50,448 nt of DNA from Girardia tigrina (Eukaryota): assembly GCA_001938485.1 (NCBI GenBank), contig MQRK01175358.1:1-50448 (forward strand), given 5' to 3'. Both the position numbers and the translations under genes were made by a program. Below, piece by piece: positions 6,236 through 44,683 of the stretch (the first letter of the stretch is position 1; each line of letters opens with the position of its first letter). A model generated the notes under the pieces. The model was not told the DNA's origin, searched no databases, and saw only the letters and a list, made by a program, of their open reading frames with translations.

Positions 6236-6243
6236 GACGGGGA

Positions 6244-6775
6244 TGTGAGGAATATGTTAAATTTGGTATGTTGAAATTGGTTTGTTGAATTTTGTATGTT
6301 GAGTTTAGTATTTGGAAATGTGTTTCTCCCATCCAGATGGAAAATTGATATTTTAGATGTTCACGATAGATAATTATTCGAGTATAATTTGCATTTTGAA
6401 GTACAGCATAAGATATGTAAAAACTTTAAAAATATTAGATCGTTTCAAATTTTCATATTAAAATTTAAATAAAGTAAATAGTTTTAACTAAGTTTTGAAT
6501 TAAATAAATGTTCTTTCTTTCCGTAAAATAATTTTTTTAAATAAAATTAATATGTAGATAAAATTATTACTAAAATTACAAAATTTGAACTTTAAAAATA
6601 AAATCTGAAAATAATGAAAAATTTGTTAGAATAGTTGCTTATTAAAAAACATTAACTAAAAGTTATCAATTTAGAACGATGTCGAATTACGAAAGTTTTG
6701 CTGAGAGTTGTCCAAAAGACAATTCTGATTGTATTGAAAATAAAAGTTCGAAAACCCATGTTGGTGTTCTTAATA
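6244..6775 (+). repeat. 3' LTR (TGT...AATA)
   Basis: Direct repeat of 1478-2009, followed by TSD AAAGT. Confidence 0.92.
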
Positions 6776-13921: not shown

Positions 13922-14377
13922 AATAATGTTATCGTCAATTTGAAGTGGAAGAAGAAATTTTAGTAAAAGAAGAGCCACATAAAATTCGAAAATATAGAAT
14001 AAAGTATGAAGGACTAACATTACATCAAGTAGTTTTGATATACCAAAATCGATTAAATCCTAGGAGAATTGAATCGCTAAAAAGATTTATTTTGTTTGCA
14101 AACTAAGATGCGGTAAAAGTAAGAATATCTGTTATTTTTGTAAATTATAAAAATCTCAATTAATAAATTTATACTATATTATAATTAAGTCTTCAACTAA
14201 TTTAGAAAATTATTAAAGAATGATATAAATCCTGGTTGATTATTTCCCTTACTATTATTTATTAGTAAGACAACCAATTTTCAACAATTAGTTTAGGAAT
14301 GAGAGCAGCCTTTTTGATCAAATTTAATATTGTTTTTGTATAAATCAATTCAATATAAGAATAAAAATATCTGATAC

Positions 14378-14529
14378 CTTGACCATTGGTAAATCTGGAT
14401 GTTTCAATTTAATATTATATTCTTTTAAAAAATATTGTTGAATAGACATTTTCTTCTCTTCAATTTTTTCTTCGATTGCATTTTTTTTTGAAAATCCAAA
14501 AATCGTGTATTTTCGATCGTACTGCTTTC
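14378..14529 (-). CDS. ago: Argonaute PAZ exon (RKYTIFG...SIQQYFLKEYNIKLKHPDLPMVK)
   Basis: gtttag acceptor, gtatca donor, phase 1/0, PAZ core YF..Y...L.YP.LP motif. Confidence 0.9.
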
Positions 14530-17500
14530 CTAAACAAAAATCACTTTAATTTTACAGAAAGTACAACATTAATTTGCCTAAGTATATGACATAAAAACAG
14601 TATACGGATTAAGTTAAATTTTAGTTCTTAAATTCATAAAGGTAAAAACAAACCCCCGAAAATTACACTAATAAACCCAAAGCTCCCGATAATTATATAT
14701 GCCGTGTGAGAGGATCAGAAAAATTTGTATTTATCAAATGGTTTCTACTCGATACAGAGTCTATGATTTACTACGATGTGCGCCAATGCTGAGTATTATT
14801 TGTAATACAGTTATCCATCACAGTCCGGGGAAACTTATTATTAAATTTAAAAATTGAAGCTACAAAATGGTATGAAAAATGGACAATTTGTTCTGCATCA
14901 AGAAATTTTACATCAACTTTAATAGACATTCTTGAACATTGTGACTATTTTCCATCAGTCAAAACAATTATTACCATCGCTTTGAGTTTATTAGTTACGA
15001 CTTGTACTATCGACCGAAGTTTCAACACATTGAGACGTGTTAAAACATGTCTAAGAGCTACAATATTAGAATCGAAATTGTCGGGTTTATATATGATGAG
15101 GACGAAACAAATAAAAAAAGTTCATTGAAAATATAATAAAGAAATTTGGCCGTGATAAAGGACGAATGCAATTTTTACTTTCAGAATAATAAATACATTG
15201 CATAAATGATAAATTGTAATACACTCAAACCTGTATTTATGCGTTTTTTGTGTGACCTCATCAATTAATTTTAATTATATGATCACAAAAGTAAAAAATC
15301 ACCAAAAAGGACTGCATAAAAACAGGTTTCAGTGTAAAATATGATAAATATATTGTATTTTCATTAATAAGATTTTATTATTTATAAATTGATTTTGTAT
15401 AATTCTATTTTTATATTTCTATGATTGTAGTATATTATTAAAAACATTCTAAAAAAATATTTGTTAATTTACGGTTTTTATTTTTGACCCCCTTTGGATT
15501 TTTTTTGCTGCGGACGCCCATGATGATGTGCGGTCAGAATTGAAAAACAAAACTTCGGTACTGTCATGTAGATGTACAAAACCTTTTATGAGTTGAATAA
15601 TCTTTTTCACTTCAGGTCTTTCTACCAACAATCATCTAGAATATAGATTATTTACAGCAAGTAAAAAAATATGTAAAAAAAGAAAGTAACTGAGTAAAAT
15701 TAATTAAATAATGCACAAATAAGGCCTCAAATTGAATCTTTAATTAAAATTATCTAAAAATTAGAAATTTCATTTTAATGCCAAGATTTTTTCAGATTAA
15801 CCCTTAAATATTATAAAACAAAATATTATCACGGATCCTAAGACACAGATATGTCTTGATATTAATAATAATATCGCAAAAGCAAGATGCACACTCATTA
15901 ACACTTTTTATCATACTGGTCAGGTAATGCATAAAAACCAATGTTTATTTACATTTATTAATAAACAAAATGAAAAAATCGTAATTTACCCTTAGCATCA
16001 AATCTGTAGCACTAAAAAGCCAAGTAAAAACATTTTTGTGAAAAAAATATTGAAAAGTATTGATTGTTCATTATCATCTTAGAGTCCCATCAATGAGATA
16101 CAGAATACCGGTATTTTATGCAACTGCTACAATGAGTTAAATACTTCGTAATATATTTATGTTCTTTTACGATACAATGCGCGAAATTACAATAAATTAC
16201 AATAAAATTATAAATTTGAATTTCGAAAACGTATAAAAAACTATTTACATTAAAATGTGAATAATATCAATACCTTCAGCATTTTTAAGATGACTGGCCT
16301 GCACTCGGAGAGTTTTAAGTTTCTTGGAAAGCATATGTGCATTAAAACCCCGGTCTATATTTGTTATCTTCGATATATATTCCCAAAGATTGATTGCCTC
16401 ATGACAGACAACTTGAGTCTAAATAACATACTTTAATTATTTCAAATAATTTTAATTCAAATTTTCATTGGGAACAATATTTTTAATGTGGCTTTGTATA
16501 TATGTTGTTTTTAGAGTGGTACCACTTCTACTCTGAGAGATGATTAACATTTTTAATTTTTATTATTTTAAAGTAATTTAGTCTAAATTAAATTAAAAAT
16601 ATTTAATTTCTTAAAAAATCTTTAAATTGAATCTATGCAGATCTAGAAAGCTTTATGGGTTATTTTGAAAGTAGTTTATTGGAATGAGAAGATTAGACGG
16701 AAAAAGAAGCTTACAAAGGCATTGCATTTGTCAATGGCACCAATACGACAATGCTATGAATAATCTTATTAAAACTAACAGTATTGAAAGTTACGATCAT
16801 GCCTTATCACGAATTTCAAACTGCGATTACCAAAATTTTGGAATGTTTTTGGAAGTAATTAAAAAGGATATGCAAAAATCAAGATTAAAGATTATCCAGA
16901 AAATACTGCTATCACAACAAATCCACGAAGAAAAAATTAACTTCAATTGAATGAAAGAATAACAAAAATTGTCTTCACATATAATGGAGATCAAAAATTT
17001 CAATATTTATTAAGTATTAGTATCTTAGTTTAATATTTTTATTTTTAAAAATAAAGTTTAGTTATTTATTAAGTTGTTTTTAATTTATGTCATATCTTAC
17101 ATTGATTTCAAACTTTTATAATACTTTCAGGTAAGTTAAGTTTTACAATATATTCGGGTTTCCAAATTTTGTTGTAAAAAATTTTGTAATGCCAAGTTTT
17201 GTTGTGCTAAGTTTTACAATATATTATGGTGTGACAAGGAAGCCTTAATCCATGAGTAGCCGTTAGCGTTGACGAGTCTCTTTTTATGTTTTCCGTCCGA
17301 TAAAATTTGTTGATATATCCTTTTTGCAGCATTTAAAACAAGAAATATTCCTTAACAAGGGAGGATTTTTAAGGATCCTCTTTTGCCCTTTGAACATTTC
17401 AGTCATCAGACTCATGAAACTTTATATACGTACTCTTAAGATGATTTCCCTTTGTTATCATTTAGACTAACGATCGATCTTTTATTTGCCTTTTTATCAT

Positions 17501-20500
17501 CAAAATTTATGGCCTTCAATCGTCTTGATGTTTATTGATCTTCCATTTTGTTGTGGGAAAGAATAAAGTCACACGCGAAATGTATATTTTTGAAATTAAA
17601 TCACAATCAGCAGTTTATTCATTTAAACAAATGAATTATTAATTCATATTACACATTTATTAATCCATTCGCTGTTAATATGAAAAATATATATCGACAA
17701 AAATATTTAAGCGTTCTTTTTTTAATAATATATTAGTATTACTTTAATATCTTTTATTATTCGTAGAACTCTGTATTGGGAAACTAGCAAAGATGAAATA
17801 GTCGTTCCCTTTCCAAGGAAATTGAGATCTCTTCAAATTAGATTGTTATTTATTTATATTGTAAAAATTGAAGTTGTTTATTTAAATTGAAAAAATATTC
17901 AATCAATTATATTATTATGAGTTATTCATATTTTATACTGGAAGAACTTTATGATTGTTAAATATTATAGAAATAATTCTGTGCAATCAAATTTAAAAAA
18001 TCTAAAAACTCAACAACTATATATTAAAAAAAAATTTAAATTTAATATCTCAAAATTAATGTTTAAACCTTATCAAAGTTGAATCGAACTTTCCACATGT
18101 GAGGACGAATTGTAGTTGAGTACCCTTCTATCAAAATATATGGGCCACATCTGAGAGGCTGTGCGGTCCTAATATCGAAGATAGCTCTTCCACCAATGTT
18201 TATTAGGTTTTTATTGAGAAACATTTCTTTCATAGTTGTATCAAGTGCTCGTAATGCTTCCTATTTAATTTTAAATATATCCAATAAAAATGATCATATT
18301 ACATGTGGCATATCATCACTTCTACCTCTACCAGTGATGTATGTATTTATATCATTTAATTCAATATCTTCTTCCTTTACTCGTTGTATCGTGAAATGAC
18401 ATTTTACATTGTCTCCGTCTAATTTATAATCAAAAGTTATTTTATTGATTCCATCCATATTAGGTAACGATATTAATTGGTTATTGAATATAATTCTACC
18501 ACCATCAAAAACTGGAAGTCCCCTGAAAAAATAAGTTTTACTTTAATGTCAATTATTAAAAAGATAATGAATGTCAGGTAAATCTAAAATTTTAATATTA
18601 AAAATCTGACTGCTGACATATCAGTTATGGTCCTTTAATGTCATTGGGTTGACAATTAGATCTTAATTTATTTAAATTATTTTAAATCACATCATTATCA
18701 TGTATGGCTTCTGGAATCAGCAAAGTAATTAAGTATTTTTATAATTATTCTTGTCGAAGATGATAGAACAAGAAACCATTCAAAATTATTTCTCTATCAT
18801 AAAAAATAAAAATAATTTTTTATAATGTAATTCAATGAAGAAAAAAATCGGAAACATGGTAATGAAACAGTATTTACCATTATCTTAGTTGTGATTAATT
18901 ATTGATTTGTTTAAATATTCAAAAAAGATTGTAAATAAAAAATATATTTTATTAGTTAAAATTATGAGTTCTGATTCGAAACCTTGAGATAGATGGTGAT
19001 CACGTTAGTATTCCGATCAAGGTTTAAGGAAACCCTCGAGAAGATTATAAAAGAATACAATGGAGTCGATTCTGAAGAAGGTAAAATATGATACAGAGAC
19101 AATGCTCAGAATTCTTTGGTTTAACATTCTCGGAAATGTGCGCTTATCTGTTGATAGACGAAGCAAAACTTGTTTGGTGAAATGTAGCATAACATGGTAA
19201 GAAACTAATATCAGATGTGCAATCCAAAGATTGGTTCCAGAAAACATTTATAAAGAAAGTTCCTCTGTTGGAAGAATTGGACAAACTTAGCCCAATTTGT
19301 CAAGGTAAGAATGAAAGATTCTTAGCATTCGAATTAAGGGCTAAGAAAACAATTGAAATTTTCTGGAAACACAGCGATGAAGAAATTTCTATTAAACTGT
19401 TAAAACATCGGATAAAATCTCATATTCCCAATGATCAAATTGTTTTCAAACCAAACATCTCAATGGATGAAATGAGAGCGGAAGCTAAGATTTATGAGGA
19501 AAATATTTCAAAAGAATAAAGGAATGATGGTGATAGATGTAAGAACATCCTATGCAGAAATGACAAAGAAAGACAAACATCAAGTTAGAATATATGAGAA
19601 ACCAGAACATAGAAGAAATGCATCTCGATTGGCTGAAACAAACGACAGACAACCAATATTACGAATATAACGTAGTTAGTCATGAGAGAATATCTAGTAG
19701 AATAAAAGAAGACAAACAACAATATAATCGCCCGATGCATTCGGCTTGGTACGAAGTAAGGAAGATATATTGCAAAATAAAGAGACTTCCGACTCCAGAA
19801 GAGGAGCATTTAACCAGAAGGGATTGTAATTGCTGTTGTCTTTGTATCTTCGAGAGTCTAAAAGAGAATCAACTGAATGAAAATTTCCTGGTAAATCTGT
19901 TTCCAAAAAGCTCCGAATTGGCACATCCCATCGGAAATCCGTGATGCTTGGATTACATTGGTGTCGATTTTGCTGGAAAAAGTGTTCACATAAACTCCAC
20001 ATACTATAGTGATCTTATTCAGAAGTGCAGACGTGCTCGACGAAAGCCACATGGATATCCAATGTGGCTATTACAAGATAATGCCCCTATTCACAAAAGT
20101 GCTGAAACAATGGAAACAATTTCGAAAAGTGGATTTGTGTTGCTGGATCACCCTCCATACAGTCCGGATCTCATACCAAATTGATTTTTACCTATTTACC
20201 ACGTTTTACTTAACTTGCTTTGGGTTCTGTCTGTCTTTCTGTTTGTTTGTGATGTTTCACTTTCCACACGCTTTTTTAGACCACTTCCACTCATCCGATC
20301 GTTCTGAAATTNNNNNNNNNNNNNNNNNNNNNNNNNNNNNNNNNNNNNNNNNNNNNNNNNNNNNNNNNNNNNNNNNNNNNNNNNNNNNNNNNNNNNNNNN
20401 NNNNNNNNNNNNNNNNNNNNNNNNNNNNNNNNNNNNNNNNNNNNNNNNNNNNNNNNNNNNNNNNNNNNNNNNNNNNNNNNNNNNNNNNNNNNNNNNNNNN

Positions 20501-23500
20501 NNNNNNNNNNNNNNNNNNNNNNNNNNNNNNNNNNNNNNNNNNNNNNNNNNNNNNNNNNNNNNNNNNNNNNNNNNNNNNNNNNNNNNNNNNNNNNNNNNNN
20601 NNNNNNNNNNNNNNNNNNNNNNNNNNNNNNNNNNNNNNNNNNNNNNNNNNNNNNNNNNNNNNNNNNNNNNNNNNNNNNNNNNNNNNNNNNNNNNNNNNNN
20701 NNNNNNNNNNNNNNNNNNNNNNNNNNNNNNNNNNGTAATTCAGAAATCCGCCCCACGTTTTTGGTTAGGTATAAAATTTCTCACATGTCTAGAAAAAAAT
20801 TATTTTCCACTTTTTAGTCCATATGAAAACGTGGTTTTTAAAACTTTTTTATTAGTAAAATGAAAAGATATTTGAGAGGCCAAACGTTTGAAAATGCTGA
20901 TGATCTGCGTCAGTGCATGGAGGATTTCCTGAAGGATCAGCCACCAATTTTCTACAAAAATGCATTCTTAGAACTTTTTGATCGTTGGAAGAAGTGTGTG
21001 GTTCATGAAGGGTCTTATGTTGAGAAATAGTACCTTTATATGATTAATGTTCCTGTGTTGTAATATGATGCTCCTGTTATTTTACTTTCTTACTTAGTCC
21101 GGGTACTTATTGAGCACACCACGTAAGAAATCAGTTTTAAAGTCAATCCACGGAAATGCAAATTTGAAGTGGGAGAGTTGGTATTTCTGGGACATACAAT
21201 TAATAAAGACGGTATCTCAACAAATAATTTGAAAGTGGCAGAGATTCAAAATTTTCAGATTCCTTAGTGTATGCGAAATTTACAACCATTTTTATGTCTG
21301 TGTACCTACTATCGACGATTTATTAAGAATTATGCAGTTACCAGCACTGTTGCACAGTAAATGTAGCGGAAAATGTAAAGAAATATTTTGGTCAGACGAG
21401 TGCGACATAAGTTTTAACGAGTTGAAACAAAAGCTATGTGGTGTATCAATAGGGCATATGTGAACCCGAGTAATTACGTAATCTTAGATAACCATGCATC
21501 AATTGGATCGATAAAAACATTATCAAGTTAGAAATCAGAAGATGAAGAATTAGTAATCGCGTATGTATCAAATACTTTAAACACACACGAAAAAGGGTAC
21601 TATGTGACAAGAAAAAGAGCTATTAGCTTTAGAATAGTTCATATTACATTTTAAGTAATATTTATATGACAAGCGATGTACGGCAAGAACTGATCATAAA
21701 GCATGGGTATGGATGAAGATCACTTCAAAACTAATAACTCTTCCATTTCAGATAAGGTGAATTTCTGAAATGGTGACGAACATGGAAATACAGATGGATT
21801 GTAACGAGTACATGATGTTTGTGCACCATGTGAAACAAAAGACGAAGAACAAAAATCAACAAAACCAAGAGTGAAGCATATCAATGCAGTGTTTATTCAG
21901 TCTATAATTCAATAGATGAAAGAGGAACAAGGAAAGTGCTCAGAGTTGAACCAGTTGAAACAAACAGAGGAGATGACAGAAGATGAAAAGAATGAAATAA
22001 CCAATGAACTATTACAACTAAAAGACCAATTAATCTATCAGAATGGGTTATGTGGTAGACAAGAAGGAAATTGTGTGTTAAAATTTGTTTCGAAGCAAAT
22101 TAGAAGAGATTTCATCAGAAATACACAGAAATTTATGTCATGTAGGTATAAAACAGGCACAAAAATATATCCAAAATCATATTATGCTACCAGATTTAGC
22201 GAAAGAGGTGAAAATTATTATCGGAGAATGTCTGGAATGCATACAGAAAGATTGGAAGCGAAAAAGCACAAGAGAAGTTGATTCCAATAAGAAGTGACGA
22301 GTTTTTAGAGTAAGTCGTGATGGACGTCGCATAGGTAGGTGACAAGAATAGCATGTACACATATTTATTGGTTTTGGTTGACCAGTTTTCGAAATTGGTC
22401 TGTTCGACTGAGATTAGATCTCAAAACGAAGAAACCGTAGTTCTATGTGTGTTGATCAAGTTAATATATAGAAATTGGAAGCCAAGAACAATATTAACTG
22501 ATGATGGAAAATGTTTTAATAGCGGAAAATTTAAAGAATTTTGCAGAAGATACGGAATTGCACTCAGATTTAGTAGCCCATTTTAACATCAATCAAACGG
22601 GCTTGCAGAAAGAACCATTCGAACAGTAAGAGACATGACAGTAACAAGCAGAAAGAGACACAGACAAACGATTATGGTGGAAAATTGTTCCGAATATAGA
22701 ATTCTGTCTAAATGCAGAGTTCGACAGGATATTCGCGCTTCGAAGTTGTGTTTAATAGAAAAATATATTTACATGCTGCCGCAGGAATAGCTAACGATGA
22801 AGAGAGTAATGTGATTAAGATGAAGGTTAGAGAAAATTTAGAGAATTCAAGACGAAAGGAAAATTGAGATAGAGAAAAGACAACAAGTCAAAATTTCGAG
22901 GATTGTCAGGAATTCTTTGTAAAACAAGATCCTACAAAACAAAGAACACATTCCAATTCGATTGACCGTATCAAATTACAAGGCATATGGCAGCAATTTT
23001 AACTTCAGATTCTGAAAGATGAAAGTATAATTCTTCGAAGAATTAAGTTGATTAAGAAAGTTAAAAGCGAATCATAAAAGAGAGGAAATTTGTGATTAAT
23101 TATTGATTTTTTTAAATATTCAAAAAAGATTGAAAATAACAAATATATTTTATTAGTTTTGATTTTAAACCTGGAGATTTAACTATCTTAAAAAGAAAGT
23201 ATTCGTAATCAATAAAAGCTAAAATACTTTAATAATAAATGTTAAGAATTAAAAGTAAAGGGAAAATTTTTGAAATAAAAAATAAAAATTTACTTACCAA
23301 AACACCAAATAAGAAAACAATAGACACTTGAAATTAAGTTAAATTAGTTAATTAAATATAATTTTATAAAATACCGGTTTAACAAAATAATAAAACTTTA
23401 GTAATTTAGTTCCTCAAGTTTTTTAAGAAATAATTAAATAAATAGGATTTAAGTTAAGTATAAATAAAATTAAAAAACACAAATTTGTTTTAATATTTGA

Positions 23501-26500: not shown

Positions 26501-26602
26501 AATTATGTATAATAAGTGTCCTTTTATTAAAATATGTTTTGTTTATTTTTAATAATAAAGATGTAATATATACTTAAAATCTAGAAAATACTTTGGATCA
26601 CC

Positions 26603-26666
<64 letters not shown>

Positions 26667-32600: not shown

Positions 32601-35600
32601 CAAAAACATAGCAAAAGAAGTCAGATGATAATTAACAGTGTCTAGATGATATTTTTATCTACAAACAAATAAAAAACAATATTAATATGAAAATCGTTAA
32701 AGATATAACAAAATAATGATTAGCGGAGCCATAAAAATGAATTTTTCAAAAAATGGCTTTTTCATCCAAACCGCTGTAGCCACATAAAAATAATTGTTAC
32801 CATTAGAATCAGCACACCGAAATTGTATAAAAAACACTAAAAATGAAATGAAACATTTTTTGTTGCCCTGTGTAACATATGATACACATATCTTATAATA
32901 TATAAGTACGCATTTTAAAAAAAATCACAAAAATGCCAAGTTACAGGTTTGTAAATAACAATTGAAAAAAAGTACGTCTAAGTGTTTACATTATTTATTA
33001 GTTTCATAATACAAAGAACAATTATCATTGTTACACTTGAATTAATGTTCTGAAAATTCACTACAAAATAGTGAAAATTTAACTAAAACAGTTAATTTTT
33101 ATGTAACAAAAAATTGAGCGTACCAACAGTATCATTGATTTGAAAAGAGGAAGCATTATATGTCAAATAATATCAACAAAAGCATTACAGATGCATATTA
33201 AATTTTTAACTTTTCAATAAGAAGACATAAATGGCAATTAGGAATTCATATGACACTTAACATTTTTTTCACTTAGAATTTTTCCTTGAAACGCATTTGT
33301 TGTAATTACATATGGAAATGCAAACAGTAAATCAACATTTTAAGCAAGTACCGACTAATATGATCTAAACTCTTTTGTGATGATTATTCTATTTGTAGCT
33401 ATCCGTTACTTGTATTGTTGACTTCGGCACTGCCCTAAATGACGTGTTAACGTTTCGTGAGATTTTTACGACCAATTTAAAGGAAAATATTTTAATATAG
33501 AAAGTAATATAGTGTTTTTCGATCTATTACGACTTTATTGTATTTAATTACATCATTTCTCATTTCATAACTTTACTGTTGCAGTTGATGACGCCGTTGT
33601 TGTATTTGTTAAAGTGACAAGAATATTTTAAATAAAAAGCATTAACTCTAAAACATTATTTTTTATTAAACTTTAAGAATCGATATTTTCACGATTTATT
33701 GATTTTTTTTAAATAACGTAGCGTATTCCGATAACAAACTTTACAATATCATGTGGTCGTTTCAATACATACACTGTAAAAATTACTCAATGTAAGAGGT
33801 ATCTTAACAATACTTTTTGATTTACTAAAAAAAATTTCGATCGGATTCAGGAAAGAGTAGGAAGATAACTGATATTAAACACTACATCTATCCAATCACG
33901 AGATTACGGACATTCTCTCCAATGTGTGACATCGCACTCATTACAGTTATATTCATAAACAAAATCAGAAAATAGTGTTAAATGTGTAATTACTTAACAT
34001 ATTAAAAACTTAATATTAGTGGCTGTTCTAAATGAATTGTTAAAGTTTTTTAATTCATCAGAATAAGGTACAATTAAGCAATATTTCAGCATCTTATTAC
34101 AGGGTTTGTCATGTGTTTTCATAATTGCGACTTTTCATTTCGTATTTGCCACATGTCATTTCGTAATTAGTAGATTTAATTTTCAAAAGTATAAGAGTAT
34201 AAATTTTATTAGTGACTAGTAAATCAAAAACTACATATAATTTATAAGTTTTCAATTAATATTGTTGTGGAACCAATTCTGAGACCTTACAAAGTTTTTT
34301 TGATCAAATTTTGGCATAATCATTTATTGTCATTGAGAATGAGTGAGTGTGCAAAGTTTGAAGAAAATCGATTGAGTAGAAGGCCTTCAAAAATAGGTTT
34401 CTAAATTCCATGGATACAACACACACATATATATATAGAAAGTAAGTTAATAAAAAGAATGGAAAAATTACTGTAAATTTACATTTATTTTGAAATGGAG
34501 GTACTATTAGGTTATACAATAAAAATTGTAATTGAAAGGAATATGATGAAAAATATTTTTCCATGCTTGCTGATATCGATGATACTTAAATTTAAACAGT
34601 ACAATCATGCACTGCTATTCCTTCTGTCGTACTCGTCAATTCTAAATAAATCCCATTGATAACATATTTTCGAAATAGAAAGAAATAATGAGTGCACAAT
34701 TAACTAATGAACAAGAGCTTTTGTAAAACATTAACAACTAGTGTGAACCCGTTTCGCCAGGTCTGGCGAATTTTTTTGTTAACTAAATGCCTGTAAGGAA
34801 ATTTAAAAAATCTAGTTTTTTATAGAAATTATATTTTATTAATTAGAAACTTAAAATTAATTTGAAGTGGTTTATTACATGCCGAAAAATTCGTAATTCT
34901 TCAACAATTAGCCGAGTTCCATTGCACAATCCACAATCATGGTCGAGATTTATCCGCTTATCCACCGTGAACTTCACACAGACAGAATGACAGACAGAAA
35001 TCAATCTACAAGATGAGCCGGAAATCGTATCGATTTGCCAATTTTCCAGTGATTTAATGCGCCATTCCAAACAACATTCTTTCGGAATAAAATTTGAATT
35101 GTTCATTTAATTTAAAATCAATTGAATCGAAAATTTGAATTTGTTATTTTTATATTGGAATATTTAAACAAAAATTTAGTAATTTCTTTTTGATTTTTTT
35201 TGTTTCAGGAAATCATTATAATAATGCTAATGAAGATTGAAATTTAAAACATTGAGTTTTTGTTGACATATTGATTTTCGTTTTTTTATTTATGTTTTTA
35301 TATTTCATGTGTGTTATTATTATTATTTTACATAAATAAATAATTGATTTTTTGAACTTGTCGTTTTGCTTATTTTGTTGTACATAAAAATTTTAAATGT
35401 TTTTTTTCCAATATGGATTTTAAGGAAACATTTTAGTTAATGTAAAATAATTATAAAAATAATCACAATACTTTGTAAATTTCCCGTCGTTGTTTAACGA
35501 ATCACTTTAATCGTCGGGAACTTCAGACAGACAGAAATCATAATTCTTTTATAGTATTAATACTCATTTATCAATTTCGACATAAGATTGCAATGGATTT

Positions 35601-38600
35601 TATATGAACATTTTCAAGTTTATTCCATTTTGTTCAAATATGAAACAGATTTACGATCGTAATTAGGTAAATGTACTTTAGATTAATTTCATTATTTATT
35701 TTATTTTTTATCACTAAAAACTAATAAAAAAAGAAATTTGATATTTTTCAAAATGAGATGTAGTAATGACGAAATAATGAGTCTCAAATACGAAATGACG
35801 TGACAAACCCTGTAATATCGAGTTACCATTATTTTACTCAATCAATATTTATAAATTCTAAAGGATATATTTTAATTGAATAAACATAAAAAGTAGATGG
35901 TATTTTCAGACAGTTGATATTGAAAATAATAAAAGTTAAAAACAAGAGAGTTTTTAATATGATAATAATAACTTACTCCTTCAGCTCCACGAGGTGGTTC
36001 ATCTTTTTTCCATGCACTTTGCTGTTGAATTCTTTCTTGTGGTTGTGTAGTTGGAAAAGGTTGCTTTTGTTGTTGCTGTTGTTGATATTGTTGTCGATAT
36101 TGTTGTTGTTGCTGTTGGTGTGGTTGTTGTTGGTATTGTTGTTGATGATGTTGTTGTGGTTGTTGTTGTTGATGTGGTTGTTGATATTGTTGCTGTTGCT
36201 GATGCTGTGGTTGTTGTTGTTGATGTGGTTGTTGATATTGTTGTTGTTGCTGTTGGTGTGGTTGTTGTTGGTATTGTTGTTGATGATGTTGTTGTGGTTG
36301 TTGTTGATATTGTTTCTGATGTTGTTGCTGTCGATATTGTTGATACTGTTGTACTGGTTGTTGTTGTTGCTGTTGGTATTGCTGTTGTTGTTGTTGATGA
36401 TATCTCTGTTGATGTTGTTGATGTGGCATTTGTTGCTGCTGATGTTGTTGTTGATATCTTTGCTGAGGATTTCCTTGTCTTGAACCTTGATCCTGAAAGA
36501 AATACATTAAATAGATTGAATATATTATATTTACTTACCCCATAACTTTTCATAAATGTTTCGTAATCGGCTCCAGAAGTTTCTTGAGCTCCTTGTTGAG
36601 ATTGTTGAGGTCTATGTTGTCCAGCCGATTGATCAGTTTGTTCTTCTCTAACATTTTGTGTTTCTTGGTGTCCACTTTCTTGTCCAGTAAACTGACTATA
36701 ATATAGTATATACTCTTTTAATTTACTAACTATACTAAACATTAACTGATCAGTTTCATAAAGATTATAAATTCTTAAAAATAATAGCAACAATAAACAA
36801 AAATACATATAAAGAAGTTAAGTTTTAAAATGATTGTAAAAATAAATAAAATTTTGATACACTCGACAGCCGTCCAACAATCAAAATTAATTACTATCTC
36901 CACAATTTTTGACTGAAATAATAATAGACTTTCTTCCTTCACAAACTCTAATATTGTTGTGACGAATATTTGGTGTGTTGATGTTTTTGTGTAGTGTTTG
37001 CATGTTTAAATGTTGTGTGTTGATTTGGGATTGTGCCTCTCCTAATCAGATGGATGATCAATATTTTAATTCTTATAATCTGAAACTAATTTATTTAAAT
37101 TTAGATTTAATATTCAAATTTTTAATTTTGATTATTGTAAATTTTAAATAATTTTATTGATTTTATTTTTGTAAATTTTTAAATAATTAAAATCAAATTA
37201 ATGTTTAAAAATAATTATAAAAATAATTTTATTTTAGCCAAAAAAAATTGAATTAAATATTTTAAATAAAATAATTTTCTTCAAGTTAGTTCAGACATTG
37301 AGTGATGAATTTAAGTGAGAGCAATATTATTGATTGTCATAAAGATGATCAAAATTGTGAATGCAATAAATGTGCTGTCAAATTTGTGAGTTCTCTAAAT
37401 ATCCTTGAGACATTATTGTGGTATTTATTTCTTTATTTTGTGATTTATTGATTTTTAAAAGATTATTCAATTTTTGTACTTATAGTTTTTGTTCGTTAGA
37501 ATGGCAAGCTCACTGGAAAAAAAGAAAGCGAGTAGAACTTACTCCAATTCTAAAACACGCAGTGTACCAGTACAAACAAAAAAACAATCTCTTGTCACTG
37601 CAAAAATTTTGTCATTTCTAAAAGAAATATAATAATTTGAATTTTTTATCCATCATGATTGATTGATTATCCACCAAAATGATTGACAATATCCTTATCT
37701 CAATACGTTTCAACTTCCAAACAAGATAAATGAATCGAATTTCAGCAGATAGATGATACCTTGCTATTATGGTTAACTGAAATATCGGAGAATGTTACCA
37801 CAATTAGCAATGTTACTGTCGTAGAGAAAGCTTAAGAACTTGATGAACGGTTATAAATAAACTTCTTATATTAAAGTCATGAGCGGCTACAAAAATTCAA
37901 GCAACTTAATAGAATAAAGTTATACAAAAAGCATATGTACCACTAGAATCAACAGATACCACATTGAACTTTCTATTGCCGCAGTTATCTAAATTTGCCT
38001 TAGTGATATCTATAATCTTAAGGAAAGTGGTTCATTTTTTTCCTTTGAACCCTACACAACGCTTGCAATAAATCACATATCAGAACAAAAAAAGTAAAAT
38101 CTCGTTTGACATTGTCATTTTATGTAAATGCTTCTGGTAATGATAAGCAGAAATCTTTAGTAATTTTGAAGAATGCAAAACTCAGATACTTTGGATCGTC
38201 ATTTGACCCCAAAACGTGGATCGATTGGTTTTACAATCCATCCGGCTCCAATATCCACCAATTACACAACAATTTGTTGAAGAAAATAACTGGGACATAG
38301 AAAAAATCTCTTTCTAACGGGAATGTAAGGAATCCAGATATACATAACAAACTCGTTATGAGAATTCCCATATTGATTCAATTTTTTATTAAATTAATAA
38401 TTTTGATCATCCTTGAGACAAGCCCTTGTAGAGTTTTCAATCATCGACATCATTGAAACAGAATAAATAATTTTAATCCAATCATCGGAACACTTGAATA
38501 ATCTTCACTAATAATTTCATTGGCTATGTTGAGTTAAATATTAATTATTCTCATAAATATGTAAAAAGATTTATTCATTTAAAAATAAAATAAATCAAAT

Positions 38601-41600
38601 TATTTAACATTTTACAATGATTTTAAATTCAAAATTAGTAAATCAGAACCATTTACTAAATTATTAATTCTTATCGTTTATGTGAATAAGTCATTCAAAA
38701 ATCGATTAAAAATCGCAATTTTCAGAAATTTAATCGATTAGGAGTCAATATTTCGGGTCTAAAATTCGAACTAGTGACCCTATCAAGCATGTTTGACTGA
38801 ATAAGTAACTGGACAAAGAGGAGCATTTTAATGTGTTCCAGTACTGGAGATAAATATTTTTAAATAACAATATAATATTTTATGAGGAGTTAATTTAAAT
38901 TTGCATTTCACCAAAATAGTTTATTATTTTTTAATTTGTAATTTTTAAAAAAAAGTAAATAAATACAACTTTTAAAATTAAAATGATATAATAAAGAAAA
39001 CCATCCAAAATTAAATACATATTTAAAAATTAAAAATATATTTAAATAAAAATATATTTACAGTCATAACAATTGATATATTTTAATAAAAATTATGAAA
39101 TAATTTTAAATAAATTTTAAAATAGATAATAAACGAATTAAACTTTATAATATTTTAAGAAATAATTTTTTAAATAAAAGTCTTATAGTAAATTCAAATT
39201 AATTAGTTTTAGGATAAAATTTTATAAAAATTTTTAGTTTAAATTTAAAAATTATTTTATTAATTTGAAGTTTTAGGATTTAAAATTTATTAAATTTTAC
39301 AAAATGAATTTGAAGTAAAATTTAATAGATTAATTTTTTGGCGAAATAATTGAATTAACAAGAAATTTGTTTAATTGTCTGAATTATTGTCATTAATAAA
39401 ATTTTGGTGATGAATTATGAGCATTGAATTTGTTAATAATTTTAATCGGTTATTAAAGCCCACTTATATTGGAAAATACAAATTTTTACGCTATTTTTAC
39501 AAACTTTACGTTAATTTTTCAAAATTTCAACTAATTTTACAAATTTTAAGTTAATTTTACAATTTTTACGCACATTTTTTTACAATTTTTACGCTGAATG
39601 GAATATACAATAAAAAAACTATAAAGAAACATTTATTGATAATAAAATTATAATATTTTTATTCATTTTTCATTTCTTGTTTTCTTTTTGTATCAAAATA
39701 TTTCAAATTCGTCGTAAGACGAATGATTTGAGGTCTTCCTTTTTTTTCGGTTATCGGTTCAATATCTTTTTCAAATACAATACGTATCAGGCATGCTGAC
39801 ACTGTTTAAGCTTCACAAAAGTACAACAAATTCACTATACATCGTATACGGACGCTAATTCCAAGTAAGTAAACACAAAAAGTAGCCGAAATACAGATTT
39901 TTAAGTTCATTTATATTTTTAGCATCAAAGAGTCTTTGATATTTTCAAAAAAATGATTTTTAACCGCTTGAGAGTCATACATTAATGTCCATCTTCAAAA
40001 TTATATTGTATTACAACTGAACCGGATAGATTAACAATCTTCCTCATTTTCTTGGTACATCCAGCATTTCGGCAACAAAAAGTATATATCGTCGTCATCT
40101 TGTTATATTTTTTATCTCTCTGAATTCATATTCGACTTCCATCATTATAACTAACTCTTTCCTATGATTTCCATTGGTTTACCGTTCGTTTCTTAATTTC
40201 TTTCGTATTATTATTGTTATCCATTTATAGATAAATTTTAATCAATTTTTAATATTGGAAATAAATTTCAAAAACTAATTAATAAAAATAAAAAATCACC
40301 AATTTAAAATATTGGGTTGGCCAAAAAGTCATTGCGTTTTTGAGTACGTCCTAATAAAAAGCTTGAAAATATAAAACGATGTGATAAAATTTAAATTCAA
40401 TTATATATTCTGAAACCTTAATTTTCAGTCTATGTTTATACAAAATATTAATTGATTTTGTTTTAATTTATTACTTTACCGTCAATTNNNNNNNNNNNNN
40501 NAAAATGAGCATATTCGTCATGTTTTGTTGCATTATTTTCGCAAAGGGAAAACCGCTGTGCAAGCTCATAAGAAGATATGTTTTGTATATGGTAGTGACT
40601 CCTTAAAACTTCGACAGTGTCAATACTGATTTTCTACATTTCGTTCTGAAAAATTTCATCTGAAAGATGCACCACACTCCGGTCGACCATTTGAAGTTGA
40701 TGGCGACAAAATAACAGCACTGATCAAATCTAATCCACATATGACGACAAGAGAAGTTGCAGAGACTGGAAATATCAAAATCAAGTGTTGGAAGTCATTT
40801 AAAGAAACTNNNNNNNNNNNNNNNNNNNNNNNNNNNNNNNNNNNNNNNNNNNNNNNNNNGATCAAATCTAATCCACATATGACGACAAGAGAAGTTGCAG
40901 AGACTGGAAATATCAAAATCAAGTGTTGGAAGTCATTTAAAGAAACTTGGATTCGTCAGTAAACTCGATATGTGGTTAACACATGAACTGAAAGAAATTC
41001 ATTTGGTGAAACGTATAGACTTTTGCGATTCCCTTTTGAAGCGAGAACAAAGGGATCCATTTTTGAAGCGCTTTATTACGGGGGACGAAAAATGGATTGT
41101 TTATAACAATGTGGAACGTCGACGATGATGGACAAAACGTGGTGAGCCTGCCAAAACGATCCCAAAAGCAGAAATTCACCAAAAGAAGGTTATGCTTTCC
41201 GTCTGGTGGGATTTTAAAGGAATTGTGTTTTTTGAACTCCTTCCGAGGAATGAAACCATCAATTCAGACAGATATTGTGGTCAGCTGGAGAAATTGGCTC
41301 ATTTAATTCAACAGGAACGTCCTGAATTAGCAAATCGAAAAGGAGTTGTAAGTCAGCATGATAACGCAAGACCGCATACAAGTTTGACCACTCGCCAGAA
41401 ACTCTTATCACTGGTTGGGAGGTTTTGCCGCACCCACCGTATTCTCCAGACTTGGCCCCATCGGATTTTCACTTATTTAGATCACTGCAGAAAAACATTC
41501 GCCAGTGATGATGACATCAAATCGTTCCTAGACGGCTTTTTTGCTGACAAAGGCAAAGGTTTTTATTCTGAGGGTGACCGTGCTTACAATAACAATATGT

Positions 41601-44600
41601 TAAAATCTAAAAACCAAATTAATCAAACAAAAGTACGTCTTTGATTAATTTAGTTTTTTGATATAAAAATATATTTAAAACAACGTGTAAACGATAAACT
41701 TTAATTTTAATTCGAGAAATAATCACAGTCAAAATAATATACGTCAACGTTTGAAAAAAAATAATGTCACTTTATGCCGAATCACAGCCGAATATGTGTT
41801 AGTACGAACTTCAATATTTGAGGATTTTTTGAATCACTTCTTTATTTTCTTTCTCGTCTTCAATCGTAATAATTTAAAGTGTCGAAAGGTGAAATGAGAA
41901 GAATGTTTACAGCTAAAAGGCTGATGTCAAAAATAAATCACGGCGGCTTTATAATAAGCAATTGTTAACTGTTATTAATTATTAATTTTTTGGATTGAAT
42001 GCTTTTTGAATTTTTAATTCAATTTGCTATTATCATAGTAATTCCATGGCGATATAATTATAATTTTATATAACTGTATTTCTTGTTTTTCTCCATTTTT
42101 TTTACAAATCTCATCTGTAAATGTTTAAACATTATCACATAACAAAGAGGTATTAAAAAAAAATGAAAGCGAAGGAATTCTGCACAAATAAAACAAAGGG
42201 TAGAAATAAAGTTAAAGAGAAATCGAATCATATTAACTTTCTTTGTCACTCACGAAATAAGTAGGGCACTACATTTATGAATCAGGAATAATGAAGCTAC
42301 CGGAAAGGTGGAAGAAAGTGATTGAAAATAATGGACAGTATATCGTGTAAAAATATTTGTGCATCCATGTCATTTTTTGATAATAAATATTTTAGTAAAA
42401 AACGCAATGACTTTTTGGCCAACCCAATAGTAATCTATAAATTTTTATTATTTAAAAAAATTGGAAAGAAAGTTTAATTATATTTAGCGTAAGAAATTGT
42501 AAAAAATAGCGTAAAAACTGCAAAAGTTAACTTTAAAAAATTAGAAAGTGAACGCCATTTTTCACAATTTATTTTCGTAATTAATTTCGGCGGATTACCT
42601 AGTGCCATCTTCAGACTAAATTAACACTGGCTTTTTGCAGCTTATATATGAGAAAGGTGATTATGTAATCAATTATGTAATAAAGGCTCTATTTGAAAAT
42701 GTTTAACAGAGAAGTTGAGTGTNNNNNNNNNNNNNNNNNNNNNNNNNNNNNNNNNNNNNNNNNNNNNNNNNNNNNNNNNNNNNNNNNNNNNNNNNNNNNN
42801 NNNNNNNNNNNNNNNNNNNNNNNNNNNNNNNNNNNNNNNNNNNNNNNNNNNNNNNNNNNNNNNNNNNNNNNNNNNNNNNNNNNNNNNNNNNNNNNNNNNN
42901 NNNNNNNNNNNNNNNNNNNNNNNNNNNNNNNNNNNNNNNNNNNNNNNNNNNNNNNNNNNNNNNNNNNNNNNNNNNNNNNNNNNNNNNNNNNNNNNNNNNN
43001 NNNNNNNNNNNNNNNNNNNNNNNNNNNNNNNNNNNNNNNNNNNNNNNNNNNNNNNNNNNNNNNNNNNNNNNNNNNNNNNNNNNNNNNNNNNNNNNNNNNN
43101 NNNNNNNNNNNNNNNNNNNNNNNNNNNNNNNNNNNNNNNNNNNNNNNNNNNNNNNNNNNNNNNNNNNNNNNNNNNNNNNNNNNNNNNNNNNNNNNNNNNN
43201 NNNNNNNNNNNNNNNNNNNNNNNNNNNNNNNNNNNNNNNNNNNNNNNNNNNNNNNNNNNNNNNNNNNNNNNNNNNNNNNNNNNNNNNNNNNNNNNNNNNN
43301 NNNNNNNNNNNNNNNNNNNNNNNNNNNNNNNNNNNNNNNNNNNNNNNNNNNNNNNNNNNNNNNNNNNNNNNNNNNNNNNNNNNNNNNNNNNNNNNNNNNN
43401 NNNNNNNNNNNNNNNNNNNNNNNNNNNNNNNNNNNNNNNNNNNNNNNNNNNNNNNNNNNNNNNNNNNNNNNNNNNNNNNNNNNNNNNNNNNNNNNNNNNN
43501 NNNNNNNNNNNNNNNNNNNNNNNNNNNNNNNTCAGTAATAAATCTCCCACTCCTCTCGGTTTGTGCTCCGATCTTGTTTATAAATATACATGTAATGGGT
43601 GTAACGCCACATACATTGGAGAGACCTCTCGTCATCTCTGCAAACGGATCAAAGAGCATAGTCGGTTGGATAATGGGAGCAATATTGCCGAACATAATTT
43701 AAAATGTAAAAAGAAAATCGGAGAAAATGATTTTAGAATTCTGTGTAATCGATTTAAAAATTACTGGGAGAGAGTAAAGTGTGAGGCCTCATTAATAAGA
43801 TCCATGGATCCAAAAATTAATATCCAAGCTTCACACTCAACTTCTCTGTTAAACATTTTCAAATAGATCCTTTATTACATGAGTGATTGCATAATCACCT
43901 TTCTCATATATAAGCTGCAAAAAGCAAGTGTTAATTTAGTCTGAAGATGGCGGGTAATCCGCCGAAATTAATTACGAAAATAAATTGTGAAAAATGGCGT
44001 TCACTTTTTAATAATGAATATCAATTGCCATTATTTTTTACATTCCTTAAAAAATTAGCGTTAAAATTTTTAAATTAGAGTAAAAATTACTGCATTGAAG
44101 ATGCAGTAATGGCAAAACGCTTACGTTTTTTGATTAAATTTGAAAATACAAAGTGACCTTTATTTCCATTATATATATATATATATATATAAGCGCACTC
44201 AATAGTTAAATTTAGCAGTATTCAATCATTGCTTAAAATTTCAAAATTTTTAAATATTTATGATTAATAATCAATTGTTGGATATCTTAAATTCACTGAA
44301 ATTTTTACTAGAAATCGTATTAAATATATTAGGAAATGTCGATTTTTTGATTTGATTTAAAGGATTTATCATTACTATTTAAGATATTTTAAATAACCAA
44401 ATTTCTGTCGTTATTATTTTTTATTTATTTTACATAAAATTTTAAAAAAAAGGATAATTTGTAATCATTAAAATGGATCAATATGAACGATCATCCAGCC
44501 ATTGCTTTAAATATCACTAAAATCCATATTAAATGAGAAATAAAATTCAATTCAAGAATAATGAAATAATATTGGAAATCAAATTATTTTCTCACTCACC

Positions 44601-44683
44601 GTTGTTGATTTGATCCTCTAGAAACATAATAAGAATTATTTATTAATTAATCAATTAAAAAAATACTTCTTCTTTTTTGGCAT
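14378..44683 (-). CDS. ago: Argonaute-family gene, multi-exon, 5' part (Gln-rich N-terminus, N, L1, PAZ); 3' exons not found in window
   Basis: Manual splicing at GT..AG sites: 44667-44683, 44600-44617, 36539-36695, 35977-36492, 28725-29012, (27457-27470?), 24663-24932, 18303-18522, 18069-18260, 16274-16418, 14378-14529. Phases match at every junction except exon 5 to 6, which needs the candidate micro-exon. Motifs RPDDGGRKGYSIALTINC..IYMYDI, PVFDG, EALRALD..IRPHMWKVRFNFD and SIQQYF..YNIKLKHPDLPMVK match Argonaute N/L1/PAZ consensus. Confidence 0.9.
14700..15522 (+). mobile_element. hAT transposon 3' remnant
   Basis: Dimerisation motif FPSVKTII..VTTCTIDRSFNTLRRVKTCLRA; terminus ...GCGGACGCCCATG. 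Confidence 0.75.
16274..16418 (-). CDS. ago: Argonaute PAZ exon (TQVVCHEAINLWEY...LKTLRVQASHLKNAE)
   Basis: tttag acceptor, gtattg donor, phase 0/1, LKxLxVxxxH PAZ motif. Confidence 0.85.
16640..17030 (+). mobile_element. MULE transposase C-terminal remnant
   Basis: KTNSIESYD...NFGMFLEVIKK resembles RTNNxxEGWH...PNIWxFxxxLK. Confidence 0.5.
18069..18260 (-). CDS. ago: Argonaute linker-1 exon (EALRALDT...IRPHMWKVRFNFDK)
   Basis: Matches the Ago L1 pattern xALQALD...GF..SVRP..WK..LNID; 42-nt upstream intron. Confidence 0.9.
18303..18522 (-). CDS. ago: Argonaute N-domain exon (GLPVFDGGRIIFN...DDMPH)
   Basis: tttttcag acceptor, gtaata donor, PVFDG motif. Confidence 0.9.
19945..21123 (+). mobile_element. 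5'-truncated mariner element nested in the second Gypsy
   Basis: LLQDNAPIH...HPPYSPDL, RWKKCVVHEGSYVEK*, TIR-like end followed by TA. Confidence 0.85.
20198..20853. mobile_element. Small non-autonomous insert (Helentron/HINE-like) inside the mariner
   Basis: Splits YLF|SKMK; sub-terminal inverted repeat accacgtttt/aaaacgtggt, tctg/tttg microsatellite, T-rich ends; middle is an N gap. Confidence 0.45.
24663..24932 (-). CDS. ago: Argonaute N-domain exon
   Basis: tttag|C CTT..., LPDRPDDGGRKGYSIALTINCLDMKIKPMKIYMYDIEL; ends AA|gtaaat, phase 2/2. Confidence 0.9.
25020..25075 (-). ncRNA. Minimal hammerhead ribozyme motif, sense to the Argonaute pre-mRNA
   Basis: CUGAAGA - stem II GGCGG/CCGCC - GAAA - palindromic AUUAAU - UH. 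Confidence 0.7.
25224..25278 (+). ncRNA. Minimal hammerhead ribozyme motif (inverted pLTR copy)
   Basis: aatttagtCTGAAGAtggcgggtaatccgccGAAAttaattacgaaaataaatt. Confidence 0.7.
25690..26603 (+). mobile_element. Degenerate Tc1/mariner-superfamily transposon
   Basis: FLDEIVFSDKAVFILHRIVNRHNFRTWG matches the IxFSDEAxFxLxGxVNRHNxRxW motif. Confidence 0.7.
26607..26735. repeat. (TA)n microsatellite spanning an N gap
   Basis: Visible in sequence. Confidence 0.95.
28725..29012 (-). CDS. ago: Argonaute exon 5 (GSIQRQGRPQE...TPVSSE)
   Basis: 288-nt GC-richer open frame absent from the ORF track; cttaag acceptor, gtaata donor, phase 0/0. Confidence 0.75.
29231..29890 (-). mobile_element. Gypsy 3' end (integrase tail, PPT, LTR), sister family of the 1478-6775 element
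   Basis: RIFEVGDQVLI..EDDR and RNVEWLKPFK homologous to 6060-6235; LTR 29231-29655 ends GTTCTTAATA. Confidence 0.8.
29900..30860 (-). mobile_element. Mariner element, 5' half
   Basis: HTH-containing ORF 30245-30628 (EGRP, WVPH); 5' TIR ttagggttgcctcataagttttgtcg. Confidence 0.85.
30880..32872 (-). mobile_element. CMC/Chapaev3-type DNA transposon, decayed
   Basis: CYFC, ELDDLVRDL, IDSSTRSLKVVLLHNGN, HYLHSHL and EEHGEKFHQ motifs; terminus CACAGGGCAAC flanked by TTA. Confidence 0.8.
34100..35812. mobile_element. Non-autonomous TIR element (TA-flanked) containing a Helitron
   Basis: TIR cagggtttgtca / tgacaaaccctg with TA on both sides. Confidence 0.65.
34738..35560 (-). mobile_element. Helitron deletion derivative
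   Basis: 3' CTAG preceded by hairpin ttcgccag-ac-ctggcgaa; Pif1 helicase fragment NLDHDCGLCNGTRLIV; 5' ..TACTATAAAA and cagacaga repeats. Confidence 0.75.
35977..36492 (-). CDS. ago: Argonaute exon 4, Gln/His/Tyr/Pro-rich repeat (172 aa)
   Basis: tctttcag|GAT ... GGA|gtaagt, 516 nt, phase 0/0. Confidence 0.8.
36539..36695 (-). CDS. ago: Argonaute exon 3 (QFTGQESGHQET...FMKSYG)
   Basis: tatag acceptor, gtaagt donor, open frame, Gln-rich composition. Confidence 0.8.
36958..37414 (+). repeat. Solo LTR
   Basis: Starts TGTGACGAATAT, flanked by ATTGT direct repeat, homologous to 11045-11432. Confidence 0.75.
37500..38330 (+). mobile_element. pogo/Tigger-like transposase remnant
   Basis: KKRKRVELT..K HTH start; DIYNLKESG; LTLSFYVNASGNDKQKSLVI. 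Confidence 0.7.
40312..42427 (+). mobile_element. Full-length mariner (D,D34D) with frameshifts and an internal insertion
   Basis: TIRs TTGGGTTGGCCAAAAAGTCATTGCGTTTTT, TA TSDs, ITGDEKW, HDNARPH, HPPYSPDLAPSD; ~700-bp insert (about 41567-42278) splits GFY|ESGIMKL. Confidence 0.93.
42545..44046 (+). mobile_element. Penelope-like retroelement, 5'-truncated with inverted pLTR
   Basis: GIY-YIG LVYKYTCNGCNATYIGETSRHLCKRIKEH (ORF ends 43866); inverted pLTR 42545-42722; 12-bp TSD TTAAAAAATTAG. Confidence 0.9.
43933..43987 (+). ncRNA. Minimal hammerhead ribozyme motif in the Penelope pLTR
   Basis: CTGAAGA..ggcgg/ccgcc..GAAA-TTAA-TT. Confidence 0.7.
44600..44617 (-). CDS. ago: Argonaute coding exon 2 (18-nt micro-exon, GSNQQR)
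   Basis: tttctag|A GGA TCA AAT CAA CAA CG|gtgagt; phase 2/2 fits both neighbouring exons. Confidence 0.7.
44667..44683 (-). CDS. ago: Argonaute coding exon 1 (start, MPKKK)
   Basis: ATG CCA AAA AAG AAG AA|gtattt; phase 2, 49-nt intron to next micro-exon. Confidence 0.65.

Follow-up and report, generated by a model that had tools for sequence, protein, structure and literature searches.

A probable FLAgo-type Argonaute gene of Girardia tigrina runs through transposon-filled introns and off the end of its contig

Does a working gene hide among the transposon remnants of contig MQRK01175358.1 (C175358) of the planarian Girardia tigrina and, if so, what kind of Argonaute does it encode? The window, that is, the whole stretch of DNA analysed here, is this entire contig of 50,448 bp. 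A sequence-only reading had proposed that an Argonaute gene is threaded through positions 14378 to 44683, with about 2 kb of coding sequence in 10-11 GT-AG exons, two or three of them under 20 nucleotides (nt), and that it might belong to the flatworm-specific Argonautes (FLAgos) and act with small interfering RNAs (siRNAs). Our analysis indicates that the segment from 44683 to 14378 on the minus strand is very probably the 5' half of a functional, expressed FLAgo gene, the orthologue of the Schmidtea mediterranea transcript SmeT050994, and that this half covers, with the same high confidence, an N-terminal poly-glutamine (poly-Q) extension, the N domain, the linker L1 and most of the PAZ domain.

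When spliced in local scripts, the eleven GT-AG exons of the model form a 2046-nt open frame from the ATG at 44683 to 14378, that is, 682 codons with no stops. The protein starts with MPKKKKG, two micro-exons of 17 and 18 nt are included, and the introns range from 42 nt to 7.9 kb. The coding length, exon count and micro-exons agree with what had been proposed, and both limits proved exact: 14378 is the last base of exon 11, and 44683 is the A of the ATG that opens MPKKKK, with an in-frame stop four codons upstream. Because the window is a complete contig, the gene, which overruns the contig start, is cut by the assembly and not by biology. The genome searched for the missing parts was the 1.43-Gb assembly of 255,254 contigs with ~27% G+C.

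Spliced and expressed exons

The part of the model closest to the contig start is directly supported by RNA. Four public runs from four studies (X1, X5, X6 and X7), classified as RNA by an automated guess and containing contigs that skip introns, yielded spliced contigs of 1.5-3.2 kb, which were compared with the window over positions 13000-18900. The contigs of all four runs join the segments 18522-18303, 18260-18069, 16418-16274 and 14529-14378, with intervening introns of 42, 1650 and 1744 nt; the cut at each junction was chosen (+1) such that every intron is GT..AG on the minus strand. At the upstream loose end, at 18522, the contigs carry the final bases of the exon whose end is at 24663 (..IVMAFLKGNK), spanning intron 7 together with the assembly gap at 20312-20734. 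Four GT-AG junctions linking exons 7-11 are thus observed, the kind of evidence by which the sequence-only reading had proposed to check its model. Per exon, the contigs from X1 and X5 show 0-1 base differences to the window, and those from X6 and X7 are ~97% identical to it; the longest, of 3216 and 3226 nt, extend for 778 nt upstream of exon 8 and for ~1.73 kb downstream of exon 11. The five exons are as follows.

24663-24932, minus strand: exon 7, 270 nt, in which the Argonaute N domain begins (FLPDRPDDGGRKG..INCLD..IYMYDIEL); RNA contigs connect its 3' end with exon 8
18303-18522, minus strand: exon 8, 220 nt, N domain; RNA contigs of four runs
18069-18260, minus strand: exon 9, 192 nt, end of the N domain and linker L1 (..IRPHMWK..); RNA contigs, after the 42-nt intron
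16274-16418, minus strand: exon 10, 145 nt, start of PAZ; RNA contigs
14378-14529, minus strand: exon 11, 152 nt, PAZ core (..QQYFLKEYNIKLKHPDLPMVK); RNA contigs and Pfam PAZ, continuing on contig C40412

All three motifs on which the earlier proposal was based lie on the minus strand within these exons: INC..IYMYDI in exon 7 (24932-24663), IRPHMWK in exon 9 (18260-18069) and PDLPMVK in exon 11 (14529-14378). A paralogue elsewhere in the genome, described below, is 49%, 42% and 55% identical in exons 7, 8 and 9, respectively, and has a 51-nt intron at the same place as the 42-nt one. A metagenome homologue of exon 7 is 63% identical and shares the acceptor position. When a protein library was searched with the open reading frame (ORF) of exon 7 for a full-length orthologue, only a 95-aa metagenome exon matched. 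Soil and other metagenome contigs (L001, from JGI metagenome 3300031718, P0002 and P0004) contain single exons that match exon 7 and the L2 exon with 51-69% identity and share the exon boundary; they suggest that the samples include DNA from a relative among the flatworms, possibly a land planarian.

At the far end of the contig (49755-50334, plus strand), the window contains an inverted 580-bp copy, 94.8% identical, of exon 7 and 297 bp of upstream intron (24663-25229). The protein encoded by this copy is 95% identical over 87 aa, but the copy diverges 8 nt before the exon end and lacks a donor site. Genome-wide, exon 8 occurs only twice, in the gene and in its paralogue, and has no second copy of this kind. 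The copy appears to be either a lone partial duplicate or a mis-joined allele.

Argonaute domains and catalytic residues

In a six-frame scan of the whole genome, Pfam PAZ (PF02170) matched the window at 14372-14518 on the minus strand with 32 bits, against a cut-off of 28.8 (E 1.1e-4). Exon 11 also matched the PAZ domain of human AGO1 (E 0.012) and reached a probability of 97% in hhalign. The hhalign matches of exons 7-11 fall, in order, on residues 50-90, 115-182, 188-251, 298-318 and 321-376 of a reference Argonaute, in which the Pfam domains are ArgoN 61-197, L1 209-259, PAZ 290-410, L2 420-465 and Mid 474-538; two exons on C40412 continue the series at 382-432 and 433-501. The N and L1 matches are weak when taken singly (P 5e-4 to 6e-3), and the identity of these domains appears convincing only through the strict collinear order together with the orthologue. 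Of the HMMER hits that the sequence-only reading had called for, the one to PAZ was obtained and those to ArgoN and ArgoL1 were not; the proposed identity as N, L1 and PAZ nevertheless stands, given the PAZ score over the cut-off, the collinear matches and the orthologue.

Across the window and the linked contigs, the order N-L1-PAZ-L2-MID-PIWI is kept, the PIWI part lying outside the window. The catalytic DEDH positions are retained on the linked contigs, in GIDVTHP, ..IVEIV.., YRDGVSEGQF and YYAHLAAF, as aligned to human AGO2 and AGO4; the E was placed from one pairwise alignment only.

The remainder of the gene and a complete paralogue

The sequence at the downstream loose end of the RNA contigs, after 14378, is not found in the window and has a single occurrence in the genome, on the 2.3-kb contig C40412, where an exon opening TSPNRPTYVPIELL.. 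(end of PAZ) is followed by the L2 exon. Exon-by-exon tblastn and own-genome searches located the rest.

C208573: two MID exons
C116824: first PIWI exon
C243308: last three PIWI exons, ending in ..DKLFFI and the stop codon

No located exon, in the window or on the linked contigs, contains a stop or a frameshift. The exons on the four other contigs add up, roughly, to ~1.63 kb, which together with a 3' untranslated region fits the ~1.73 kb of mRNA seen after exon 11. FLAgo-type C-terminal exons occur only twice in the genome, on C243308 and C245331. Since C245331 (72 kb) holds a complete paralogue, the four contigs are assigned to the gene of the window by exclusion. The pieces on all five contigs are collinear with the single transcript SmeT050994. 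A fragmented assembly hides an Argonaute of the RNA interference (RNAi) pathway over five contigs, and the combination of micro-exons and transposon-filled introns makes such an Argonaute gene one that is missed by ORF-based callers.

From exon 7 onward, the exon boundaries of the paralogue are identical to those of the gene in the window. The two genes share the very short intron between exons 8 and 9 (51 vs 42 nt), the NW and YAHLAA motifs and the DEDH residues, but are only 33-55% identical from N to MID and 69% identical in PIWI. The motifs of the paralogue read GGSNW, GTSRPVHY and YYAHLAAF, against GGTNW (on C116824), GTSKPAHY and YYAHLAAF (both on C243308) in the gene of the window. The paralogue corresponds to another S. 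mediterranea transcript, SmeT510000, as its orthologue. No poly-Q exons were found upstream on C245331, and tblastx of the upstream 21 kb of the window gene against this contig gave matches to transposon fragments only.

Placement among the flatworm-specific Argonautes

SmeT050994 and the gene of the window share the start MPKKKKG, a long Q-rich N-terminal region that ends in PRGAEG and the motif ..KFLP.RPDDGG.., and they are closely similar block by block over N, L1, PAZ, L2, MID and PIWI. In the published supplementary alignment, read here by eye, the Q-rich region of SmeT050994 ends ..VPRGAEG and is followed by ~58 residues and then by ..TLDIKISPTLQQKFLPSRPDDGG, with collinear blocks down to ..NEFHHDKLFFI (PMC8191739). 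Each of the two genes has a divergent sister paralogue. The differences are those between two species (the orthologue of SMEDWI-2 is 89% identical) and include Q-rich repeats of another unit and length. Missing from the published SmeT050994 model is the counterpart of the second half of exon 9 and of exon 10 (end of L1 and start of PAZ), which the RNA contigs show to be present here; the published model may be incomplete or represent an isoform. Shared within the Schmidtea lineage are the duplication, the poly-Q tail and the very short intron that separates exons 8 and 9.

In published trees, SmeT050994 and SmeT510000 are sisters inside FLAgo, together with cestode, trematode and monogenean FLAgos, whereas SmeT047591 is canonical (PMC8191739). 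The same source gives as diagnostic FLAgo motifs the NW at the end of MID, TSKPxH and a His motif ..HLAA or ..LHAA, and describes fast evolution as a hallmark of the group; it also separates FLAgos, as a clade of their own, from the arthropod siRNA Argonautes (PMC8191739). These motifs are present in the gene analysed here, although TSKPAHY also occurs in some non-flatworm sequences of the published alignment, so this motif alone is not exclusive (PMC8191739). The FLAgos of parasitic flatworms (SmAgo2 Smp_179320, SjAgo2, and FLAGO-2/3 of Echinococcus and Fasciola) share with it the PIWI signature GTSKPAHYHVL.D.N.W.SD.LQ.FTY.LCH.Y.RC.RSVSYPAPTYY.HLAAFRGR, the NW motif after KLGG and the FDGGRII motif in the N domain. 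Their N, L1 and PAZ parts are too divergent from the window gene to be linked to it by sequence searches, and their N-termini are RGG-rich where the window gene has poly-Q. An exhaustive search with the L2 exon retrieved exon-sized metagenome fragments and distant fungal Argonautes, and a search for a full-length orthologue with an alignment built around a long reference yielded nothing beyond fungal relatives of this reference.

Scores and phylogeny agree on the Argonaute (AGO) side. The C-terminal exon matches human AGO2 with 88.8 bits and PIWI proteins with 27-36 bits, and the first PIWI exon matches AGO proteins only. In a PIWI-domain tree, for which the exons were spliced with an X at every join and which contained no named FLAgo and no WAGO sequences, the gene and its paralogue fall on the AGO side (100/100) as each other's sisters (100/99), separate from the planarian and vertebrate PIWIs; the branching between this pair and the canonical and fungal Argonautes lacks resolution. 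Sequence comparison thus places the window gene in the AGO clade and not in the PIWI clade. The canonical Argonaute of this genome lies on C215872 (455 bits over 242 aa against human AGO2), with L1 and PAZ copies on C247107 and other contigs; the PIWI exons of the window gene, with 36-89 bits per ~100 aa, are far more divergent. The planarian nature of the host is evident from an intronless 836-aa PIWI ORF (G000:C224568:81535-84042, minus strand) that is 89% identical to S. mediterranea SMEDWI-2 and 74% to a D. japonica Piwi; these identities mark the genome as that of a dugesiid close to Schmidtea, though distinct from S. mediterranea. The suspected membership in a flatworm-specific clade is therefore upheld by the motifs, the higher scores for AGO than for PIWI proteins, the strong divergence from the canonical Argonaute, the collinearity with SmeT050994 and the planarian genome. 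A second long Piwi-bearing ORF (536 aa), on C236397, groups with animal PIWIL proteins in the tree.

The upstream exons and the glutamine-rich tail

The paralogue and the soil-metagenome homologue both preserve the acceptor of exon 7 (24933/24932) and its phase, so coding must begin further upstream. Six predicted exons bring the frame from the ATG to this point.

44667-44683, minus strand: exon 1, coding part, ATG CCA AAA AAG AAG AA (MPKKK plus 2 nt), donor gtattt; matches the SmeT050994 start MPKKKKG
44600-44617, minus strand: exon 2, 18-nt micro-exon after a 49-nt intron, acceptor tttctag, donor gtgagt; restores the frame (..KGSNQQR..) and is placed by splice sites and frame only
36539-36695, minus strand: exon 3, 157 nt, putative Q/E-rich N-terminal region, in frame with exons 2 and 4, donor gtaagt
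35977-36492, minus strand: exon 4, 516 nt, poly-glutamine, 99 Q in 172 codons, ending ..PPRGAEG, after a 46-nt intron
28725-29012, minus strand: exon 5, 288 nt, probable P/Q/E/K-rich linker, open frame with phase 0 at both ends
27156-27226, minus strand: exon 6, 71 nt, candidate needed to carry the frame into exon 7

For exons 1-4, splice and frame logic combined with the N-terminus of SmeT050994 provides good support; exon 4, a CAA-repeat exon, contains imperfect internal repeats that are ~78% identical. Exon 5 is probable and resembles, by eye, the stretch of SmeT050994 between PRGAEG and the N domain. Exon 6 is uncertain and constitutes the weakest part of the model: it has the top splice score among 14 frame-compatible candidates, and its inclusion leaves the frame open. 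With another donor, at 28777, exon 5 would be spliced directly to exon 7, also in a compatible frame, which would give ten exons.

A direct splice from the poly-Q exon 4 to exon 7, in an Asn-rich frame, was first proposed because the 517 nt by which the X1 contig extends upstream beyond exon 7 are just one more than the 516 nt of exon 4. This candidate is ruled out by the Q frame of SmeT050994 and its ~58 further residues before the N domain, and the match in length is coincidental. The 149 nt that separate the last repeated 30-mer from the end of exon 4, together with the 288 nt of exon 5 and the 71 nt of exon 6, give the 508 nt seen in X6 and X7; this agreement is only a hint, with the same weakness as the coincidental 517-nt match.

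Alternative explanations

The upstream exons (MPKKKK, poly-Q and the others, 44.7-27 kb) might instead make up a separate Q-rich gene, with the Argonaute beginning at or just before the exon that starts at 24932, in line with an ATG inside exon 7 (..LMRKFLP..), the lack of a conserved upstream coding exon at the paralogue and the lack of RNA contig support over 24.9-44.7 kb, a region outside the interval compared with the RNA contigs. We consider two genes very unlikely, given that the S. mediterranea orthologue is one transcript that runs from MPKKKKG through the Q-rich region and PRGAEG into the N domain. Furthermore, the RNA contigs reach 508-517 nt upstream of exon 7, the metagenome homologue that shares the conserved acceptor and phase of this exon has no internal ATG, and the frame stays open across all eleven exons. 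A decaying, non-functional Argonaute pseudogene among transposons is another conceivable reading, to which the split over five contigs, the very divergent N and L1 domains, the lone broken copy of exon 7 and the strain differences in exons 8-11 (11 nonsynonymous against 6 synonymous) would lend some weight. It is nonetheless highly improbable: the located exons are intact, spliced mRNA contigs of full-length size were recovered in four runs from four studies, and the catalytic and RNA-binding motifs are retained. Moreover, fast evolution is the published hallmark of FLAgos (PMC8191739), and the 11:6 ratio fits it. That the gene is a canonical microRNA (miRNA) Argonaute of the ago-2 type, or a PIWI/FLiwi protein, is extremely improbable. 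PAZ and PIWI domains are common to all these classes, but a canonical gene with its much higher score exists elsewhere in the genome and reads GINS, GTSRPSHY and YYAHLVAF. The window gene has NW/TSKPAH/YAHLAA, not NS/TSRPSH/YAHLVA and not TVTPTH/YAHKLA (YAHRLA), and PIWI proteins score at most 36 bits, with which the tree agrees.

The interpretation as one functional FLAgo gene has its own weak points. Whole-genome Pfam scans for ArgoN, ArgoL1 and Piwi gave no match on the contig of the window, nor did the single N and L1 exons match Pfam and PDB sequences. The strain differences in exons 8-11 suggest that constraint on the N-PAZ half is weak. The linkage of the five contigs rests on exclusion and the orthologue and not on assembly read-through, our own tree was built without a named FLAgo, and the orthology to SmeT050994 was read by eye from the published alignment and not computed. 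In the upstream part, exons 1-6 lie outside the interval compared with the RNA contigs, the acceptor of exon 5 is weak, and exon 6 is only the best-scoring candidate.

Predicted function

Two 2026 studies of S. mediterranea show that ago-2 serves miRNAs. According to these studies, ago-1 and ago-3 group with each other and separately from the miRNA Argonautes, retain the DDH triad and respond to double-stranded RNA (dsRNA) by induction; they are jointly required for RNAi, together with Dicer-2 and SID-1, but not for miRNAs. In addition, ago-3 is required in recipient cells, and siRNAs depend on it to associate with extracellular vesicles. One preprint describes ago-1 and ago-3 as 'closer to WAGOs' than to miRNA Argonautes. 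By sequence, the gene of the window is placed as the orthologue of one member of this pair, which supports the earlier suggestion of a possible siRNA Argonaute. Judging from the S. mediterranea experiments, it would have an siRNA function: by homology, the protein would bind siRNAs made by Dicer-2 and slice complementary RNA in an RNAi pathway that would respond to dsRNA and probably to viruses and transposons, and it would stand outside the miRNA pathway. Transposon defence is documented for schistosome FLAgos only and not for planarians, which keep PIWIs (PMC8191739); in the parasitic flatworms, PIWIs are missing and the FLAgos are the proteins that bind transposon siRNAs. The gene belongs to an already known family, and the present model, although a good one, opens no new question; it does provide the exon structure for the planarian FLAgo pair of the ago-1/ago-3 type, recently tied to systemic RNAi.

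The tail before the N domain comprises ~350 residues, encoded by the 172-codon poly-Q exon and other Q/E/P-rich exons. Drosophila AGO2, an siRNA-class Argonaute distinct from the one for miRNAs, likewise evolves fast and carries a long region of glutamine-rich repeats at its N-terminus. It does not belong to the same subgroup as the window gene, FLAgos being apart from the arthropod siRNA Argonautes (PMC8191739). On general grounds, the two Q-rich tails, which are not alignable, are probably independent. Any role of the poly-Q tail would be conjectural. A speculative idea, to which we give rather little credence, is that it is a conserved, rapidly changing disordered tail that drives association with condensates or vesicles, convergent with the Q-rich repeats of Drosophila AGO2; if so, it might bear on the reported cell-to-cell transfer of AGO-RNA complexes in planarians. 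Given that the tail is present in the window gene and SmeT050994 and was not found in the paralogue, it could separate the roles of ago-1 and ago-3.

Transposons, repeats and gaps in the introns

Every long intron holds remnants of transposon proteins, and a long element lies in the intron after exon 11.

1478-6775, plus strand: Ty3/gypsy-type long terminal repeat (LTR) retrotransposon in the intron after exon 11, with open gag (zinc knuckle), protease-reverse transcriptase, RNase H and integrase frames; its 532-bp LTRs are 93.8% identical
19948-22586, plus strand: intron 7, Tc1/mariner DDE_3 fragment interrupted by the gap at 20312-20734, and a retroelement integrase (H2C2 and rve)
29929-35106, minus strand: intron 4, Mos1-type helix-turn-helix with mariner-like pieces (29929-30628) and a Pif1 2B Helitron-like fragment (34846-35106)
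41192-43863, plus strand: intron 2, mariner transposase fragment (41192-41644) and a GIY-YIG domain, Penelope-like (43540-43863)

Many contigs with 90-95% identity to the window stack at 13.2-13.9 and 14.6-15.5 kb, a pattern that multi-copy repeats would produce. The five assembly gaps are all intronic, and none overlaps an exon.

40488-40501, 40810-40859 and 42723-43531: gaps in intron 2
26667-26716: gap in intron 6
20312-20734: gap in intron 7, the sole one bridged by RNA contigs

The gap at 40810-40859 is flanked by two 88-bp stretches (40722-40809 and 40860-40947) that are 100% identical, which is the usual look of an assembly artefact and not of a real tandem duplication. Finally, a short repeat of ~180-270 bp, probably a MITE-like element, is present in the window in at least four copies that are 94-97% identical and lie in both orientations (24962-25309, 42540-42722, 43784-44049 and 49762-50028); it contains the open frame MAGNPPKLI.KINCEKWRSLFNNEYQLPLFF, and one copy is located directly upstream of exon 7.

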